64,000 nucleotides of DNA. Origin: Paraphysomonas bandaiensis (lineage: Eukaryota; Protista; Chrysophyceae). Below, one piece after another: positions 10,519-18,920 of the stretch. Every line of letters begins with the position of its first letter. Position 1 is the first letter of the stretch. The stretch is taken from contig CBFFRP010000263.1 of the NCBI GenBank assembly GCA_965644295.1, positions 310,001 to 374,000 of the forward strand, in the 5' to 3' direction. The notes under the pieces are model-generated. The model searched no databases, was not told where the DNA came from, and saw only the letters and a program-made list of their open reading frames with translations. The position numbers were made by a program, and so were the translations under genes.

Positions 10519-10772
10519 GAAGTCGAGGTAATACCAAAACCTGGGTTTTGATGTAAAACCTGGTGAAATTTTTGATGATGGTTGGAAAAGGGTATAACTA
10601 TGCACAATAAGTAACTATGAAGATAATAACAGTATGAAAAGTATTATTTATAATATTTTTTCCTAATTTCTTCCATATTACTTCAGTTTTACAGCAATAA
10701 AAGTCACCGACTACACATATATATTACATACAGTTCACAAGTATGAACTATAACCATCTCACTATACACCAC
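10519..10772 (-). repeat. ~255-bp repeat, inverted partner of 6068-6322
   Basis: Reverse-complement match; ends in a single unit of the 2900-6090 minisatellite (ACCATCTCACTATACACCAC). Confidence 0.9.
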
Positions 10773-10779
10773 TTTACCA

Positions 10780-11050
10780 TCATCAACATATATCAGCAAT
10801 AAGTGCAATTGACCATTACTCCATCGCATATACAAGCATGTATCTAAAATGCAAGCAGTAAAATGTAACGATTTGATGAACTTGTCAATATGCTTGTTCC
10901 ACTGCCTCGGTGATGACCGCAAACCATATAAGGCCTTGATCAATTGAAAACACCACCCCGCTGGCAACTCTTCATCAGGTGGAGGTGCCATATAAACATC
11001 CTCTTCAAGATCGGCATAACAAAACGCTGATGATACATCCAACTGAATTG
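10780..11050 (-). mobile_element. Ty1/copia reverse transcriptase fragment
   Basis: DVSSAF..ADLEEDVYM, LIKALYGL and LLIYVDD motifs of copia RT (RVT_2). Confidence 0.9.
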
Positions 11051-11153: not shown

Positions 11154-14100
11154 TTAGATAGCGATCCCTAATTCTGAAATGGTCTCCGTCACAGACTTAA
11201 TTAACTCCTCACGAACACCCTTACGAATAGTAGCTAAATAGGCTTGCAACAACTCAGTCCTGCGAATCCTCTGGGACTCCTCAAAGTCAGCCCGACAGGT
11301 AAATACATTTGGGCTACGGTTATTATATCCACAATTGGCAGTATGTATGTGAGCATCGTTACCACAATCCTGTAGACAGTACCCACAGAAACCACAGTTG
11401 CAATTCGGGCAATAAAGAGCTAGGCAATGGTCATAGTCTAAGCTATCTGGAGTGAATATCCAAGCACATCTCGGACATCTAAGAGACAGAATACAATCCC
11501 TTATGTAGTTCCTATGTGTTTGTACCTCTCTATCTCTCTCGGATAACGCGGCAAGACGGATATTCTCTAGTCGTTGAGCCTCTTCGTATTGGCACCTTTC
11601 CCGCCAAGCAACAAGTTCTCGTTCACTGCGTTGATACAAACGGTGAACCTCTTCTGTTAATAACCGAACCACTTTATGGGAATCCAAGGGACCCACATTA
11701 CATCCGTGAGTATGGTAGGGGCACATGATTCGGAACTCGCCACCGTAATCTGTTCGCTCCTCCCAAACCTCATCAAACTCAGAGGCCGTCATGTTGATCC
11801 AAGGCTTCTGCAGCTCCGTGCTATTGGCTACTTGCTTAAACTTCCTCAGTATATCTTCTTTGTTGCCTCGAAGGTAAAGGTCTCGTTGCCCAGATATGTC
11901 CCATACATGAACTAATCGACGTCGACCTCTCTCAGACGTGGCCTCAACTTTGACATAAGCGTTAAGACAGCCGTCGCAAGTAAAGTGCCGAGCCTCGCCT
12001 TCGCACTGCAGCCCTTGACACATGTCTACCTCTTCCTCACACAAACAACATACTCGCATGCGAGCTTGTTGTTCTCTCTCCAGTCTCTCCTGCTCCTGCG
12101 TTCTCTCCCGCTCCTGACATAGGATTCGGTCCCGGAGGGTTTGCACATCATCAGCTAAATCTTGTATGGAAAAGAAAGACCTTTGTAGTGCATTCCTGGA
12201 GGAAAGTCGTTGCTCCGGATTTTGACACAGAATCTCACTGAGATGGTCCCTCAAATCATTGAGTTCTCCAACACACTCCGGAATCGTGTGCACTAGAAAT
12301 TCATCCACACTGCCCCGAGTGCACTCCAGGCCGAAGATATGAAGCACACACACACCAAAGGAGTACATATCAGAAGCACAAGACGGTGCTTTACCAATGA
12401 ATATCTCAGGGGCCATAAAATCATGAGACCCTCTCATTTTTCCGCCCAAAGTGGACTGATCTCGGCTCAAAGAGTCAATAGAAATATCAAAATCTGTCAA
12501 CATTGCGGTTCCCCTTTCTGAAATAAGGATATTGTCTGGCTTCACATCACAGTGTACGACATTGCTGCCGTGCAAATGAGCCAACCCATTCAGCACATCG
12601 TTGCATAGTAGACGCCTGGACAATATCCCTAACTCATGTTCTTGTCTCTTTAGGTACACCGCTAAATTTCCGTTTGTGTAAAACGGCATTTCTATATACG
12701 CTTTACTCTTCTCCAGGAATACAGCAGTGATGTCCGCTATGTACGGACTTTGACAATGGGTGGCTAATATGCGGGCTTCCCGCCAGAAGCTTTTCTGTTG
12801 GTCCTCATCGATGCATAAAAAAGCCTTTAAAAATACGTTCCTCTTAGCAAAGCGACCCCTCATAACCGAGTTTCGACTACTGCTGTCGACATATTCCAAG
12901 TCAGTGTAATCATCAATAGATCGGTCGATTATCAGTAGTCCCTTAGCCACATCAGGCAAATCTTTCGGGTCAAAACCGATACTAGGAATAATGATTGGCA
13001 GCTCAGGGTAATGAGTCAACGCAATTCGGGAGAGAGCAGCTCGCTCTTTGCACAGTGCGTTACGCTTGAACTGAAGATCAATTTTGGCATTTTTCAGATT
13101 TTCCTCGAGTTGTTGTTGTCTCGCTGTGTCACAAGTATCATCCTCAAGTTCTTGTATTTCAAACTTGTACCGCCTTATACGCCTCTGAATATTTTTAATA
13201 TCTTCCAACAAGTCGGAGAAGTGTTGCCCTTTAGGAGGACCATCAACCCATACCTCCATCTCCTCGAGCTGGCTTCGTATTCTGGCCCTCTGTTGCACAA
13301 TGTCAGCTGCTTTATGACACCAGTATGAGGTGAACCGCGTCACTGCTACACATGCTTCCCTGGTATCTCTCGTTAAGCCTGGGTAAAAACGCATAGGGTT
13401 CTGCCAATGATCCCTCTCAACTCGAAGACACGCGTCCAATTCCTTTGCACAAACTTCCAGATTATGCATACTCATGTTATTTTCTTCAACTAAGATCTCT
13501 CCAACACATCTTAAACAGTTATGGAATGCTGGAAGAGCCCTCTCAGTTTCCTCAGCGGGGGAGCGCGAGAACTGGTACACCCATTCTCTCATCTTTTCTT
13601 TGAAATCGGACAAAAGCGTCATCAGCTCAGTACACGAATACTGCCGGGTTTCTCCAGTGCATTCTACACCTTCAATCACCACATTTCCTGACCATCTACA
13701 ACCGCAGTCGACTTGCTTCAGAACCTCCAGCCAATTTTCCACGGGGGCTGCGAGGATTCTACGCATTTCAGATACTAGTGCTCGCCGAACACTATCGCGC
13801 TCACCCCGAAGTTCTTGTAGATATTCCATATCAATATCCTGACTTTCTACATGACAACGGATAGACTCTTGTAAGGACAGAAGCTTCTGTTCCAATTCTG
13901 TAAAGACAACGTCCGAACCATCAACTGACTCCAATGCTTCTATATCGGGAACAGTTAACCACGAGTCTTTGCTTTCAAATGCTGACAAAAGGCCCATCAC
14001 AGAGTCACGTAGATCATCATCAACAATTAAGGACATCCACTTCTCATCCGTACAGGTCAAATCTGGTTTACGCAAACTCCTCACTTCAGCAACTTTTGAA

Positions 14101-17100
14101 TGCACAACTGAGATATAAGAAACACATCGTCCAGCAGTCTGTCCATAACAACCATACCAATGGTATCAAACATATTATAGAACTACATCACCATCACACA
14201 CATACCTCTGCAGCTGCAGCAGCAGCTTCCTGTCTCCACCGCTTAGCCTAAACATTACACACACACAAACTCAACTCAAATCCAAAACTCACTCCGCACT
14301 TAATTACACCAACCATACCAATGCTATCAATCATATTATATCTTATAACTACATCATCATCACACACATACCTCTGCAGTCGCAGCAGCAGCTTCCTGTC
14401 TCCACCGCTTAGCCTAAACATTACACACACACAAACTCAACTCAAATCCAAAACTCACTCCGCACTTAATTACACCAACCATACCAATACTATCAATCAT
14501 ATTATATCTTATAACTACATCATCATCACACACATACCTCTGCAGTCGCAGCAGCAGCTTCCTGTCTCCACCGCTTAGCCTAAACATTACACACACACAC
14601 AAGCTCAACTCAAATCCAAAACTCACTCCGCACTTAATTACACCAACCATACCAATACTATCAATCATATTATATCTTATAACTACATTATCATCATCAC
14701 ACACATACCTCTGCAGTCGAAGCAGCAGCTACCTGTCTCCACCGCTTAGCCTACACATTACACACACACATACATACATGATTCGAATGATGCTATATCT
14801 CAGGTTCTACATACGAAATATATACTAACATGTGTATTTATTAACGACTGGCGCATCGCATCATCTTTTGCCAAGTCAACAGGAGTCTGACCCTTCTACG
14901 AAGCATAACAATAAACATAGAGAGTAGTAACACAGTGCATCACCACATGTTCCTATTGCCTTTCACATAATGGGTGTGCGGGGTCAATATATGCGTCTGT
15001 ATATGTATCTATGTGTGTATGTATGAATGTATATGTATAGAGGGGTTACTTACTTTGTTTTGTATAGTAATATCTGCTCCTTTTCTAGTAAGATACTCAG
15101 CTATATCTCTGCGACCTTTAGATACAGCCAAGTGAAGAGCTGTATCACCACCCTATAAAACAATAACAATAATCACATATGAGCCCTTACACACTCTATG
15201 TATGTATGTATGTAGGTAGGTATGTAGAGGGGTTACTTACTTTGGTTTGTATAGTAATATCTGTTCCTTCACTTATCAGATACTCAGCTATATCTCTATG
15301 ACCTTTAGAGACAGCGAAATGAAGAGCTGTTAAACCGCCCTATAAAACAATAACAATAATCACATATGAGCCCTTACACACTCTATGTATGTAGGTAGAT
15401 ACGTGTGTATGCACACATAGAGGTGTTACTTACTTTGTTTCGTATAGTAATATCTGTTCCTTCACTTATCAGATACTCAGCTATATCTCTGTGACCTTTA
15501 GAGACAGCCAAATGAAGAGCTGTATCACCCCGCTATAAAACAATAATAATAATCACATATGAACCCTTATAACCCTATATGTATGTTGGTAGGTACGTGT
15601 GTATGTATACATAGAGGTGTTACTTACCTTGGTTTGTATAGTTATATCTGCTCCTTCACTTATTAGATACTCAGCTATTTCTCTGTGACCTTTAGAGACA
15701 GCCGAATGAAGAGCTGTCCAACCACCCTATAAAGTAGTAATAATTATAATCACATATCAGCCTTTATAACACTCCATGTATGTATGAATGTACATATGTA
15801 TGTCTATAGTGGGGTTACTTACTTTGTTTCGTATAGTAATATTTGCTCCTTTACTTATAAGATACTCAGCTATATCTCTGTGACCTCCAGAGACAGCCCT
15901 GTGAAGGGCCGTGGAACCACCCTTAAACACAATAACAACAATCAAATATGAATCCTATAACCCCGTACATATATAACATAAACTGTATACATATGTATGC
16001 ATGTATGTATGTATCTATGTGTGTATGTATGCATGTATGTATAGAGGGGTTACTTACATTGTCTCGTATAGTGATATCGGCTCCTGCTCTCATAAGATAC
16101 TCAGCTATATCGCTGTCACCATTAGAGGCAGCGTAGTGAAGAGCTGTCCAACCATCCTATAAAACAATAATAAAAATCACATTTGAGCCTTTATAAGACA
16201 GTATGATTATATGTATATATGTAGGTACGTGTGTATGTACACATAGAGGGGTTACTTACATCGCCTCGTATAGTAATATCTGCTCCTGCATTTATCAGAT
16301 ACTCAGCTATATCTATGTAACCTCCATAAACAGCCAAGTGAAGAGCTGTATCACCATCCTAAAAATAATAATAATCACATTAAACAATATATATGTATGT
16401 CTATAAGTATGTGTATCATTATACATTAAAAGTATGTATGTGTGTGTATGTCTATATATGTGTATGTATAGAGGGGTTACTTACATTGGTTTGTGTAGTA
16501 ATATCTGCTCCTGCTCTTATAAGATACGCAGCTATATCGCTGTCACCATTAGAGGCAGCATGGTGAAGAGCCGTCCAACCATCCTATAAAACAATAGCAA
16601 TAATCACATACGAGTCCTTATAAGACTGTATGTAGGTATGTATATATATGTGTATGTATAGAGGGGTTACTTACATTGGCTTGTATAGTAATATCTGCTC
16701 CTGCATTTATCAGATACTCAGCTATATCTATGTGACCTCCACAGACAGCCAAGTGAAGAGCTGTATCACCATCCTAAAAATAATAATAATCACATTAAAC
16801 AATATATATGTATGTCTATAAGTATGTGTATCATTATACATCTATAAAAGTATATATGTGTGTGTATGTCTATATATGTGTATGTATAGAGGGGTTACTT
16901 ACATTGGTTTGTGTAGTAATATCTGCTCCTGCTCTTATAAGATACGCAGCTATATCGCTGTCACCATTAGAGGCAGCATGGTGAAGAGCCGTCCAACCAT
17001 CCTATAAAACAATAACAATAATCACATACGAGTCCTTATAAGACTGTATGTAGGTATGTATATATATGTGTATGTATAGAGGGGTTACTTACATTGGCTT

Positions 17101-17403
17101 GTATAGTAATATCTGCTCCTGCATTTATCAGATACTCAGCTATATCTCTGTGACCTCCATAAATAGCCAAGTGAAGAGCTGTATCACCATCCTAAAAATA
17201 ATAATAATCACATTAAACAATATATATGTATGTCTATAAGTATGTGTATCATTATACATCTATAAAAGTATATATGTGTATGTATGTAGGTATGGTATGT
17301 ATGTGGTTCTTACCTCGTCATTTGTATTGATATCACCTCTACGAACACACCTCTTGACTACATTGATATCACCGTTATGAGTAGCTGTAATAATATCAGT
17401 CAT
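11154..17403 (-). CDS. ~1465-aa protein: N-cap, 11 single-exon ankyrin repeats, 4 AKRWRQEAAAATAE micro-exons, helical/coiled-coil region, Ser/Thr protein kinase, RING and IBR/RING2-like zinc domains
   Basis: Exons 17403-17314; 99-nt exons 17191-17093, 17001-16903, 16773-16675, 16583-16485, 16358-16260, 16156-16058, 15921-15823, 15726-15628, 15532-15434, 15339-15241, 15152-15054; then 14895-14830; 42-nt exons 14750-14709, 14579-14538, 14413-14372, 14247-14206; terminal exon 14138-11154. All are phase 0 with GT/AG ends and open. Kinase motifs VFLK, HCDVKPDNIL, DFD, APE, SDMYSFG. C-terminal Cys/His patterns. Confidence 0.85.
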
Positions 17404-18920
17404 CTTTATATCTTAATGGAAATATAGCAACATACCCTCATATCTGCATGTATATCCTCATATGAGTATCCATATTTTGGACATCATTCATGTTGCAGTT
17501 TTTTTGACCGACACAAAAACCCTGGACATTTACCTGTAAGACATAAACATATCCAGGGTTTTATATCAATATCAAAAATCAGCATACAACAAGAAAATCT
17601 GGATTTCTATATGCAGAATTCTGAATTATAAGTATTTCTGTTGTGCAAAAGTATGAATATATAGATACTTTTATATGTATAGTATGATATTGTGGTGCTT
17701 ATCACTGCACTGAAGTGGATCATATTCTTATTATTGAAAGGGTCACTCACACTATTAAACTGCTCAAAGAATATATCTGATCTGATATCCAGTGTATTAT
17801 ATGATTAGAGAACATGAGTGTGGGTTCCTATCAATGAATGTATATACGTACGACTAGTACAAGTAGTATGGAGCAGGGTAGCGTGGCCATAGTGTAGGCT
17901 CACTGGTACACCACCTATAACACCGAGATAGCACTGATTCTACCACCCACGTACCCGTGTACCAACGTAGCTGACCGCATAGATTAGCACAGACACTGTT
18001 GCCGCCTCATCGGTATTCACCTTCACTGAGATTACGCCGGATTTCTCATAGCTATGCATGACTTATATATATATATATAATTCGCGTAGATTCTAGTAGG
18101 ACCATGTTTACCTTACCATAACCTAGCAAAGATTACGCGGAGCTTCTCGTGACCATGCATGACTTAGTATAGGCCTAGTGTGACATTGGCCGGGGCCCCT
18201 TCTCCCCTTGAATGCACGGGGTTTCTCGTAATCTCATATAGGCTATGTAAGTATAGTGTAGACCATCGTTTCTTTATGTATGTGTAAATTTTAAATTTAG
18301 AGAATCAATTCATTTCTAATAATAAGTAATATATATTATGACTGTTGGAAGTAAAGAGCAAGTTTGGCATGGAACAGCCGAAAAAACTAGGTGGTCAATC
18401 AGAAAGCAGAACCAATAGCGTCCAGTTGAACTCCAAAGAAACTAAAGCTTAGAACATTCAGACACAACACCGGAATCTATGTATTGCTTAGTTTAGTTAA
18501 CACTAGTACACTAGCACTATACGAGAGAGCACGCCCTCAGAATGGGGCAGCAGCATTCTTTATTGTGTGGTGTGCATGCGAGCCTCCACTATGGCATGAT
18601 TGTATGATTGGGAAATGAGAATAGCTAGCTATTTTGATGTTCTTTACAGCGACTGCCTCCTATAACTATAGAATAATATAGTTTTTCATAAGATATTCTG
18701 AATGCAATTGTATATAATATCAGATATCAGCACAGTTCCCTTGTCCAGATTGGACTATATCTTAGAAAGTATTTATTCGAAAAAAGAATCTACTTAGCTC
18801 GCCATTTAGTGCAAAGGAAAATAAGCGTAAGTAAGCAAAATGGCTATTATTATCAGCGCGTTATAGTGGAGCACATATAACACAGATACAGTCACAAAAG
18901 CAACCGCTAACGTCTTTCGG

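Follow-up and report, generated by a model that had tools for sequence, protein, structure and literature searches.

An ankyrin array of variable length precedes a kinase and a putative RBR-like ligase module without a recognisable IBR domain in the chrysophyte Paraphysomonas bandaiensis

Ankyrin repeats and an RBR-type ubiquitin ligase occur in one chain in ANKIB1, ankyrin repeats and a protein kinase in RIPK4/ANKK1, DAPK1, ILK and TNNI3K, and in rice the non-RD immune kinase XA21 and the ankyrin-RING E3 ligase XB3 belong to one pathway. To our knowledge, neither the ankyrin-kinase proteins nor XA21/XB3 bring all three parts together in one chain or include an RBR-type ligase. Here we describe a gene of Paraphysomonas bandaiensis (minus strand, 17403-11154 of a 64,000-nucleotide stretch, hereafter the window; assembly GCA_965644295.1, contig CBFFRP010000263.1, positions 310,001 to 374,000), the predicted product of which combines an ankyrin array, a protein kinase and a putative RBR-like ligase module. 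Its kinship to the ankyrin-kinase proteins and to XA21/XB3 is limited to common domain folds. ANKIB1 differs from the window protein in that its RBR is canonical and includes an IBR, in lacking a kinase, and in having few repeats that do not form a variable array with one exon per repeat. The exon organisation resembles that of the ROCO-LRR and NB-ARC-TPR candidate receptors of Ectocarpus, in which each exon encodes one repeat and the number of repeats varies among paralogues (PMC3341825, PMC11378527); an earlier note on this DNA had cited this precedent correctly (PMC3341825). In both systems the repeats change faster than the body of the protein. They differ in the repeat (ankyrin instead of LRR or TPR), in the effector (kinase and ligase instead of GTPase or NB-ARC) and in the stramenopile concerned, and for the window gene tandem duplication is seen whereas shuffling between genes is not shown.

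Direct reading of the splice sites yielded one gene of 18 exons. The 17 upstream exons are all multiples of three, in phase 0, free of stop codons and in frame with the last exon, which leads to a predicted protein of about 1,465 amino acids. Coordinates and frame agree with the earlier note, which had proposed this splicing of 17 exons onto the 983-residue tail. Exon 1 (17403-17314) starts with ATG, encodes 30 residues resembling a half-ankyrin N-cap and ends at a GTAAGA donor; scanned alone against Pfam it gave no match. It is followed by eleven ankyrin exons of 99 nucleotides each with AG/GT flanks (17191-17093, 17001-16903, 16773-16675, 16583-16485, 16358-16260, 16156-16058, 15921-15823, 15726-15628, 15532-15434, 15339-15241 and 15152-15054), which together form a phase-0 array (15054..17191) with tandem periods of 187 and 418 bp; the proposed modular layout of one repeat per phase-0 exon was thereby confirmed. 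A C-cap exon of 66 nucleotides (14895-14830) encodes 22 residues of a half ankyrin repeat beginning G-x-T-P-x-D-L-A. Its GTTAGT donor is kept in two paralogous copies (C618- and C461, see below) and was therefore favoured over a GTATGT donor 15 nucleotides downstream. Four linker exons of 42 nucleotides, or 14 residues, each (14750-14709, 14579-14538, 14413-14372 and 14247-14206) repeat with a period of 166 bp at 95% identity; they are rich in Ala, Glu and Arg and together likely form one long helix. The last exon (14138-11154; 2,985 nucleotides, acceptor at 14138) contains the 983-residue open reading frame (ORF), which begins with a helical region of about 400 residues (12921..14138) followed by the kinase domain (12126..12920) and the module. 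The helical region had no Pfam or Atlas match, and its last approximately 100 residues, which look like a coiled coil, are conserved in a homologue from another sample (P0129). No signal peptide or membrane segment was seen on reading the translation by eye, for which no prediction tool was run. As judged from the sequence, the protein is probably cytosolic and the gene appears intact and expressed.

Four sequencing runs were aligned to positions 12000-17500 of the window. Contig joints with the canonical CT..AC of minus-strand GT..AG introns were found at four of the 17 predicted junctions (runs X1 and X4), namely 14206|14138, 15434|15339, 15628|15532 and 16903|16773. The first of these is the splice of linker exon 4 to the kinase exon, contrary to the possibility, considered in the earlier note, that ankyrin and kinase exons lie on separate transcripts. 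A further joint, at which a contig steps back by 42 nucleotides, has the appearance expected of splicing between identical linker exons. Run X10 reads through introns and behaves as DNA, and parts of the gene are present in poly-A marine metatranscriptomes. Contigs of run X10 and of run X4 depart from the window within the intron upstream of linker exon 1, at 14779. The joints 14779-17269 and 14780-17273 of the DNA run have sides of 21-22 nucleotides within repeated intron and were taken as repeat artefacts; an alternative for the joints at 14779 is a variant lacking the entire ankyrin array.

The C-terminal 328 residues gave no RING or IBR match in single-sequence searches of Pfam and PDB. 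A profile of seven paralogues reached no better than E 8.6, to HOIP, and the AlphaFold model built with these seven sequences was unusable (predicted local distance difference test, pLDDT, 56). A profile of a 113-sequence alignment of the module family matched parkin in PDB with E 3.4e-5, both RING1 and RING2 being aligned (E 5e-4 for the RING1 stretch), and aligned also to the Rcat domains of CUL9, ARIH1 and HOIP. With this alignment AlphaFold returned a model of the module with a pLDDT of 95.7, for which the top 45 Foldseek matches in PDB were all RBR ligases, at modest E values of 6e-3 and weaker. Superposition by VIA-align placed model residues 24-184 on RING1 and the following helix of RNF216 and parkin (Z 7-8.1, root-mean-square deviation about 2.5 A, 90-98 residues) and residues 198-319 on the Rcat and helix of RNF216 (Z 6.2). 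In the ESM Atlas the closest clusters were unnamed hypothetical proteins, followed by the IBR and RNF216 families.

Profile and fold thus describe a putative RBR-like ligase composed of RING1 (11691..12059), two long helices (11490..11681) and a zinc domain of the Rcat/RING2 type (11325..11486), succeeded by a C-terminal loop and helices up to the stop codon (11154..11324). In the 113-sequence alignment, the conserved RING1 ligands are C31, C34, C46, H52, C55, C58, C140 and C147, and the conserved Rcat set comprises C222, C225, C239, C244, C247, C252, C255, C259, H264, H266 and C270. C239, residue 894 of the ORF, stands at the catalytic position, is at least 90% conserved over the 113 members and is a candidate catalytic cysteine. 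No conserved Cys or His columns lie between the two sets in this alignment, and the place of the IBR is taken in the AlphaFold model by helices 163-198 and 201-217 (pLDDT about 95). The RING and the RING2-like domain claimed by the earlier note are therefore supported by profile and fold, whereas the IBR it had also suggested is absent.

RBR ligases (parkin, ARIH1/HHARI, RNF216/TRIAD3 and HOIP) are the only families matched by the profile and fold searches with the module, RNF216 being structurally best for both halves. They share with it a RING1 followed by a helix, a C-terminal Rcat with a cysteine at the catalytic position and the Rcat pattern C-x2-C ... C-x4-C-x2-C ... C-x2-C, whose third cysteine is the one at that position. 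Unlike them, the module has helices instead of the IBR zinc domain, no histidine following the catalytic-position cysteine and an insert of about 60 residues in RING1, which is specific to the subfamily of the window gene. Pfam IBR models gave only sub-threshold scores on relatives of the module. A gene on another contig (C447; L008:15-1505, 1543-1935) is a further member of this IBR-less family: it has a Cys-rich head and a RING, and a separate downstream ORF carries an Rcat-like domain that gives the best Pfam IBR_2 match, at E 5e-5 and still sub-threshold.

The module belongs to a large family. Searching the paralogue profile against 1.84 billion representatives retrieved 2,270 proteins at a threshold of E <= 1e-3, of which 1,303 also passed E <= 1e-10; among the best 150 matches listed, the module is C-terminal in proteins of 141 to 3,225 residues. 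A word-indexed homologue search with the C-terminal region returned two matches only. The Pfam copy used has no model for this family. One homologue (P0199) carries the precomputed Pfam accession PF27087, which is missing from that copy and may be a recent Pfam model of the module. A kinase catalytic-loop motif was present in 36 of 60 sequences longer than 550 residues, six of the 60 being paralogues from the same genome, and the combination of kinase and module is widespread in protists. One clade shares the signature of the window gene (H-[C/G/A/S]-D-V-K-P-x-N, DFD and APE) and is represented in EukProt by transcriptomes from the dinoflagellates Biecheleria, Polykrikos and Gymnodinium; a second, with the RD loop HRD-x-K-S-x-N, takes in the choanoflagellate Acanthoeca and not the window gene. 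The heads of the kinase-bearing members include LRR, MATH, ubiquitin-like and ankyrin domains, and the module is also borne by ZNFX1-like SF1 helicases. The earlier note knew of no description of such an architecture; we likewise found none in the literature, which is weak evidence of novelty, and the pairing of kinase and module is not peculiar to this gene.

The kinase was the sole Pfam domain found in the 983-residue ORF (Pkinase, E 1e-29; score 104 bits, cut-off 31.7). With HCD in its catalytic loop (HCD-x-K-x-x-N) it is of the non-RD type, as the earlier note had stated; DFD replaces DFG, APE is present, and the beta3 lysine and alphaC glutamate can be aligned. The nearest solved kinases, PKC-theta, STK24/25, S6K and PDK1, are generic AGC/STE kinases that matched with E values between 1e-18 and 1e-14, none of them being preferred, and a word-indexed homologue search returned generic kinases only. 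With these results the overall architecture predicted in the earlier note (eleven ankyrin repeats followed by linker repeats, a helical region, a non-RD kinase, a RING and a RING2-like domain) was borne out.

For the ankyrin repeats, exons were searched individually. Nine of the eleven ankyrin exons, scanned singly, matched the Pfam Ank model in register, from its position 1 or 2 to position 33, above the cut-off (E 5e-12 to 3e-9); of the remaining two, one is a peptide-identical copy of a scanned exon and the other a copy of another at 96% nucleotide identity. A hidden Markov model (HMM) built from these exons matched all eleven, a result that is circular for them. In the 62.5-Mb assembly, close paralogues with 86-96% nucleotide identity in the last exon were found on contigs C618 (two copies head to head, C618+ and C618-) and C138, together with a truncated copy on C461. 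The HMM identified 11 units in the window, 18 in C618+, 5 in C618-, 7 in C138 and 1 in C461; these 42 units over five gene copies are all 99 nucleotides long with AG/GT flanks, one GC donor excepted. The four full copies, the window gene included, thus have 5, 7, 11 and 18 such exons; the gene is neither single-copy nor invariant in its repeats. The two copies on C618 are 95.5% identical in the body and have 18 and 5 repeats. Sequences on contig C453 (L005, L017) were rejected as an extra paralogue: they are 100% identical to C618+ (L002) over 2,622 nucleotides and end at the contig edge, and this identity is probably assembly redundancy. A distant paralogue on C409 (L007:1369-4299) is about 27-30% identical. 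Its ORF appears to encode the same protein (one difference by eye) as a complete MMETSP transcript of 1,137 residues (P0194) with three to four ankyrin repeats, kinase and module.

Most ankyrin units are closest to another unit of their own gene, which indicates tandem duplication. In the window, ankyrin exons 2 and 4 do not differ from each other, exon 1 matches exon 3 at 96%, and the similarity continues, at 97-99% identity, into the introns directly after these exons; these pairs point to growth of the array by recent tandem duplication of a two-exon unit of 418 bp. The ratio of non-synonymous to synonymous substitution (omega) was 0.92 for the ankyrin exons overall. At six binding-face positions, fixed beforehand as the equivalents of those randomised in designed ankyrin binders (DARPins), omega reached 1.65 compared with 0.72 at the other 27; the contrast in non-synonymous substitution (dN) between the two classes gave p = 4e-12, the exon pairs not being independent. 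The body (helical region, kinase and ligase) evolved with omega values of 0.11-0.43 between paralogues. The body is under purifying selection, and the ankyrin exons show fast turnover both of repeat number and of binding-face residues.

The cassette itself is not confined to this gene family. A two-exon piece of the array, introns included, had 210 or more matches spread over more than 25 contigs, with 71-90% nucleotide identity. Sampled, non-exhaustive inspection of the regions downstream of such arrays revealed PARP catalytic domains on C71 (L022:1972-2655; Pfam PARP E 4e-14) and C457 (L029:8485-9234; E 3e-13), that is, genes of tankyrase-like design made from the shared cassette. A different protein kinase lies downstream of an array on C124 (L030:5363-7159), and arrays on C633 (L026:1825-3645) and C508 (L027:1308-2813) precede long ORFs without known domains. 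Joined as it is to several effector types, the cassette is a general building block of the genome and not peculiar to the window gene.

From these observations we propose, with moderate confidence, that the gene encodes a target-binding ankyrin head mounted on a kinase-gated, IBR-less RBR ligase, the head being under pressure to change. The ankyrin array would bind a protein target; the kinase, tethered beside the ligase, would gate it in cis, as PINK1 or phosphorylation activates parkin and RNF216; and the Rcat cysteine would take ubiquitin from an E2 and hand it on, either to the captured target or to a partner in signalling. In PINK1-parkin and in phospho-activated RNF216 the RBR ligase is autoinhibited until a kinase activates it, a logic we can only infer for the present case. 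Unlike PINK1 and parkin, kinase and ligase are fused in the window protein, and its kinase is not PINK1-like; two homologues (P0094 and P0152) combine the module with both a kinase and a ubiquitin-like domain in a single chain. The variable heads suggest fast-changing targets, as in conflict with viruses, prey or symbionts.

Several points weigh against this proposal. The cis-activation step is reasoned by analogy with parkin and RNF216. The kinase has no glycine-rich loop and has DFD in place of DFG; its nucleotide binding may thus be poor, or the domain may be a pseudokinase. In the distant paralogue C409/P0194, HCG replaces HCD and a serine occupies the position of the Rcat cysteine, and yet this gene is expressed; catalysis is consequently dispensable for at least one family member. 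The excess of omega over 1 at the binding-face positions is not significant by itself (p = 0.12, again with non-independent exon pairs). As to the gene model, the junctions between ankyrin exon 11 and the cap and between the cap and linker exon 1 were not seen in the spliced contigs, which are short, and none of them spans the whole gene as a single molecule; ankyrin repeats, kinase and module are found on one complete transcript in P0194, that is, in the distant paralogue and not the window gene.

The rival that survives best, which we regard as possible yet rather unlikely, is an ordinary substrate-recruiting E3 ligase or signalling scaffold with endogenous targets, the variation in repeat number being a neutral by-product of exon duplication. 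Unequal crossing-over would leave behind what is seen here, namely units that resemble their neighbours within the gene most closely and introns with 97-99% identity between the newest copies, and the lack of significance for omega above 1 agrees with neutrality. Ankyrin repeats combined with an RBR (ANKIB1), with a SOCS box or with a kinase are, moreover, common housekeeping designs. Neutrality fits less well with a binding-face dN nearly three times that at other positions beside a body omega of about 0.2, and with paralogues that share 95.5% of their body and differ as widely as 18 and 5 in their repeats. The protein may serve either conflict with viruses, prey or symbionts or ordinary substrate recruitment.

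Next in order, and in our view doubtful, is the reading of the earlier note as an innate-immune or surveillance receptor, in which non-self ligands of viral or parasite origin captured by the ankyrin array trigger phosphorylation and ubiquitin signalling. Exon-per-repeat arrays of variable number with fast change at the binding face are features of this gene as of the Ectocarpus candidates (PMC3341825), and the occurrence of the module on ZNFX1-like helicases and on kinases with MATH or LRR heads would suit such a role. So would a look-alike of the whole module encoded by a virus: the uncharacterised protein A0A7M3UPC4 (BFVD, 361 residues) of the giant algal Pyramimonas orientalis virus matches the entire RING1-helices-Rcat model (Foldseek E 1.5e-11, 302 aligned columns). 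On the other hand, the protein has no death-fold, TIR or other signature immune domain, and in the Pfam scan of the 983-residue ORF no NTPase switch (NB-ARC or NACHT) was present, by which it differs from NLR/STAND receptors. The earlier note had also taken the non-RD state as a pointer to immune receptor kinases. The link between non-RD kinases and immunity comes from plant receptor-like kinases (RLKs) and animal IRAK-type kinases. No kinship to IRAK, Pelle or RLK kinases was found among the best solved relatives of the window kinase, which are generic AGC/STE enzymes, so that the link does not transfer and this part of the claim fell. Fast-changing ankyrin heads, furthermore, would equally fit changing endogenous or prey substrates, and the cassette is a general building block, shared with PARP and other genes.

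A bolder extension, which we consider distinctly unlikely, would regard the kinase and the IBR-less RBR as one cassette with swappable ankyrin, LRR, MATH or ubiquitin-like heads and a ZNFX1-like sister fusion, and thereby as a class of single-chain innate-immune sensors that is widespread in protists and so far unrecognised. On capturing a ligand, the diversifying array would release the kinase-gated ligase, and giant viruses would have captured the module to interfere.

It is improbable that the protein is a catalytically dead scaffold that has retained its kinase-like and RBR-like folds solely for binding. The missing glycine loop, the DFD motif and the expressed distant paralogue without catalytic Asp and Rcat Cys would accord with it. 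The window gene and all its close paralogues, in contrast, keep HCD-x-K-x-x-N, the DFD Asp, APE, the beta3 Lys, the alphaC Glu and the Rcat Cys, and omega between the more diverged pairs is 0.13-0.29. Least probable of all, and very unlikely, are two separate genes, one of ankyrin repeats only (17403 to about 14830) and a kinase-ligase gene beginning in or after the linker exons: the two unseen junctions on either side of the cap exon, the in-frame ATG within that exon and the lack of depth on it in the RNA-like run X1 speak for such a division, and against it stand the 17 stop-free exons in one frame, linker exons that lack a start codon and are joined by splicing to one another and to the kinase exon, a head-to-body layout repeated in four paralogues, and the union of ankyrin repeats, kinase and ligase in the complete transcript of the distant paralogue.

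Just beyond the 3' end of the gene, an ORF on the minus strand (10704-11042) resembles, in its translation read by eye, a fragment of a Ty1/copia-type reverse transcriptase with a YVDD motif and appears to be a transposon remnant. Elsewhere in the genome, several silicon-transporter (Silic_transp) genes scored above the Pfam cut-off on C348, C406, C398, C150 and other contigs, which points to a stramenopile that probably forms silica and not to a brown alga, the group used for comparison in the earlier note.

An immune role would matter most of the possible functions and is at the same time the one least supported. If the other findings hold, their meaning is more general. The 99-nucleotide symmetric cassettes, 5 to 18 of them in near-identical paralogues, would be a tractable case of recognition modules evolving by exon duplication in a unicellular eukaryote. 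A kinase beside an RBR ligase would be a natural single-chain version of the PINK1-parkin logic. RBR ligases, finally, are defined by the succession RING-IBR-RING, and a family of more than 2,000 representatives with helices in place of the IBR would test what the IBR is for.

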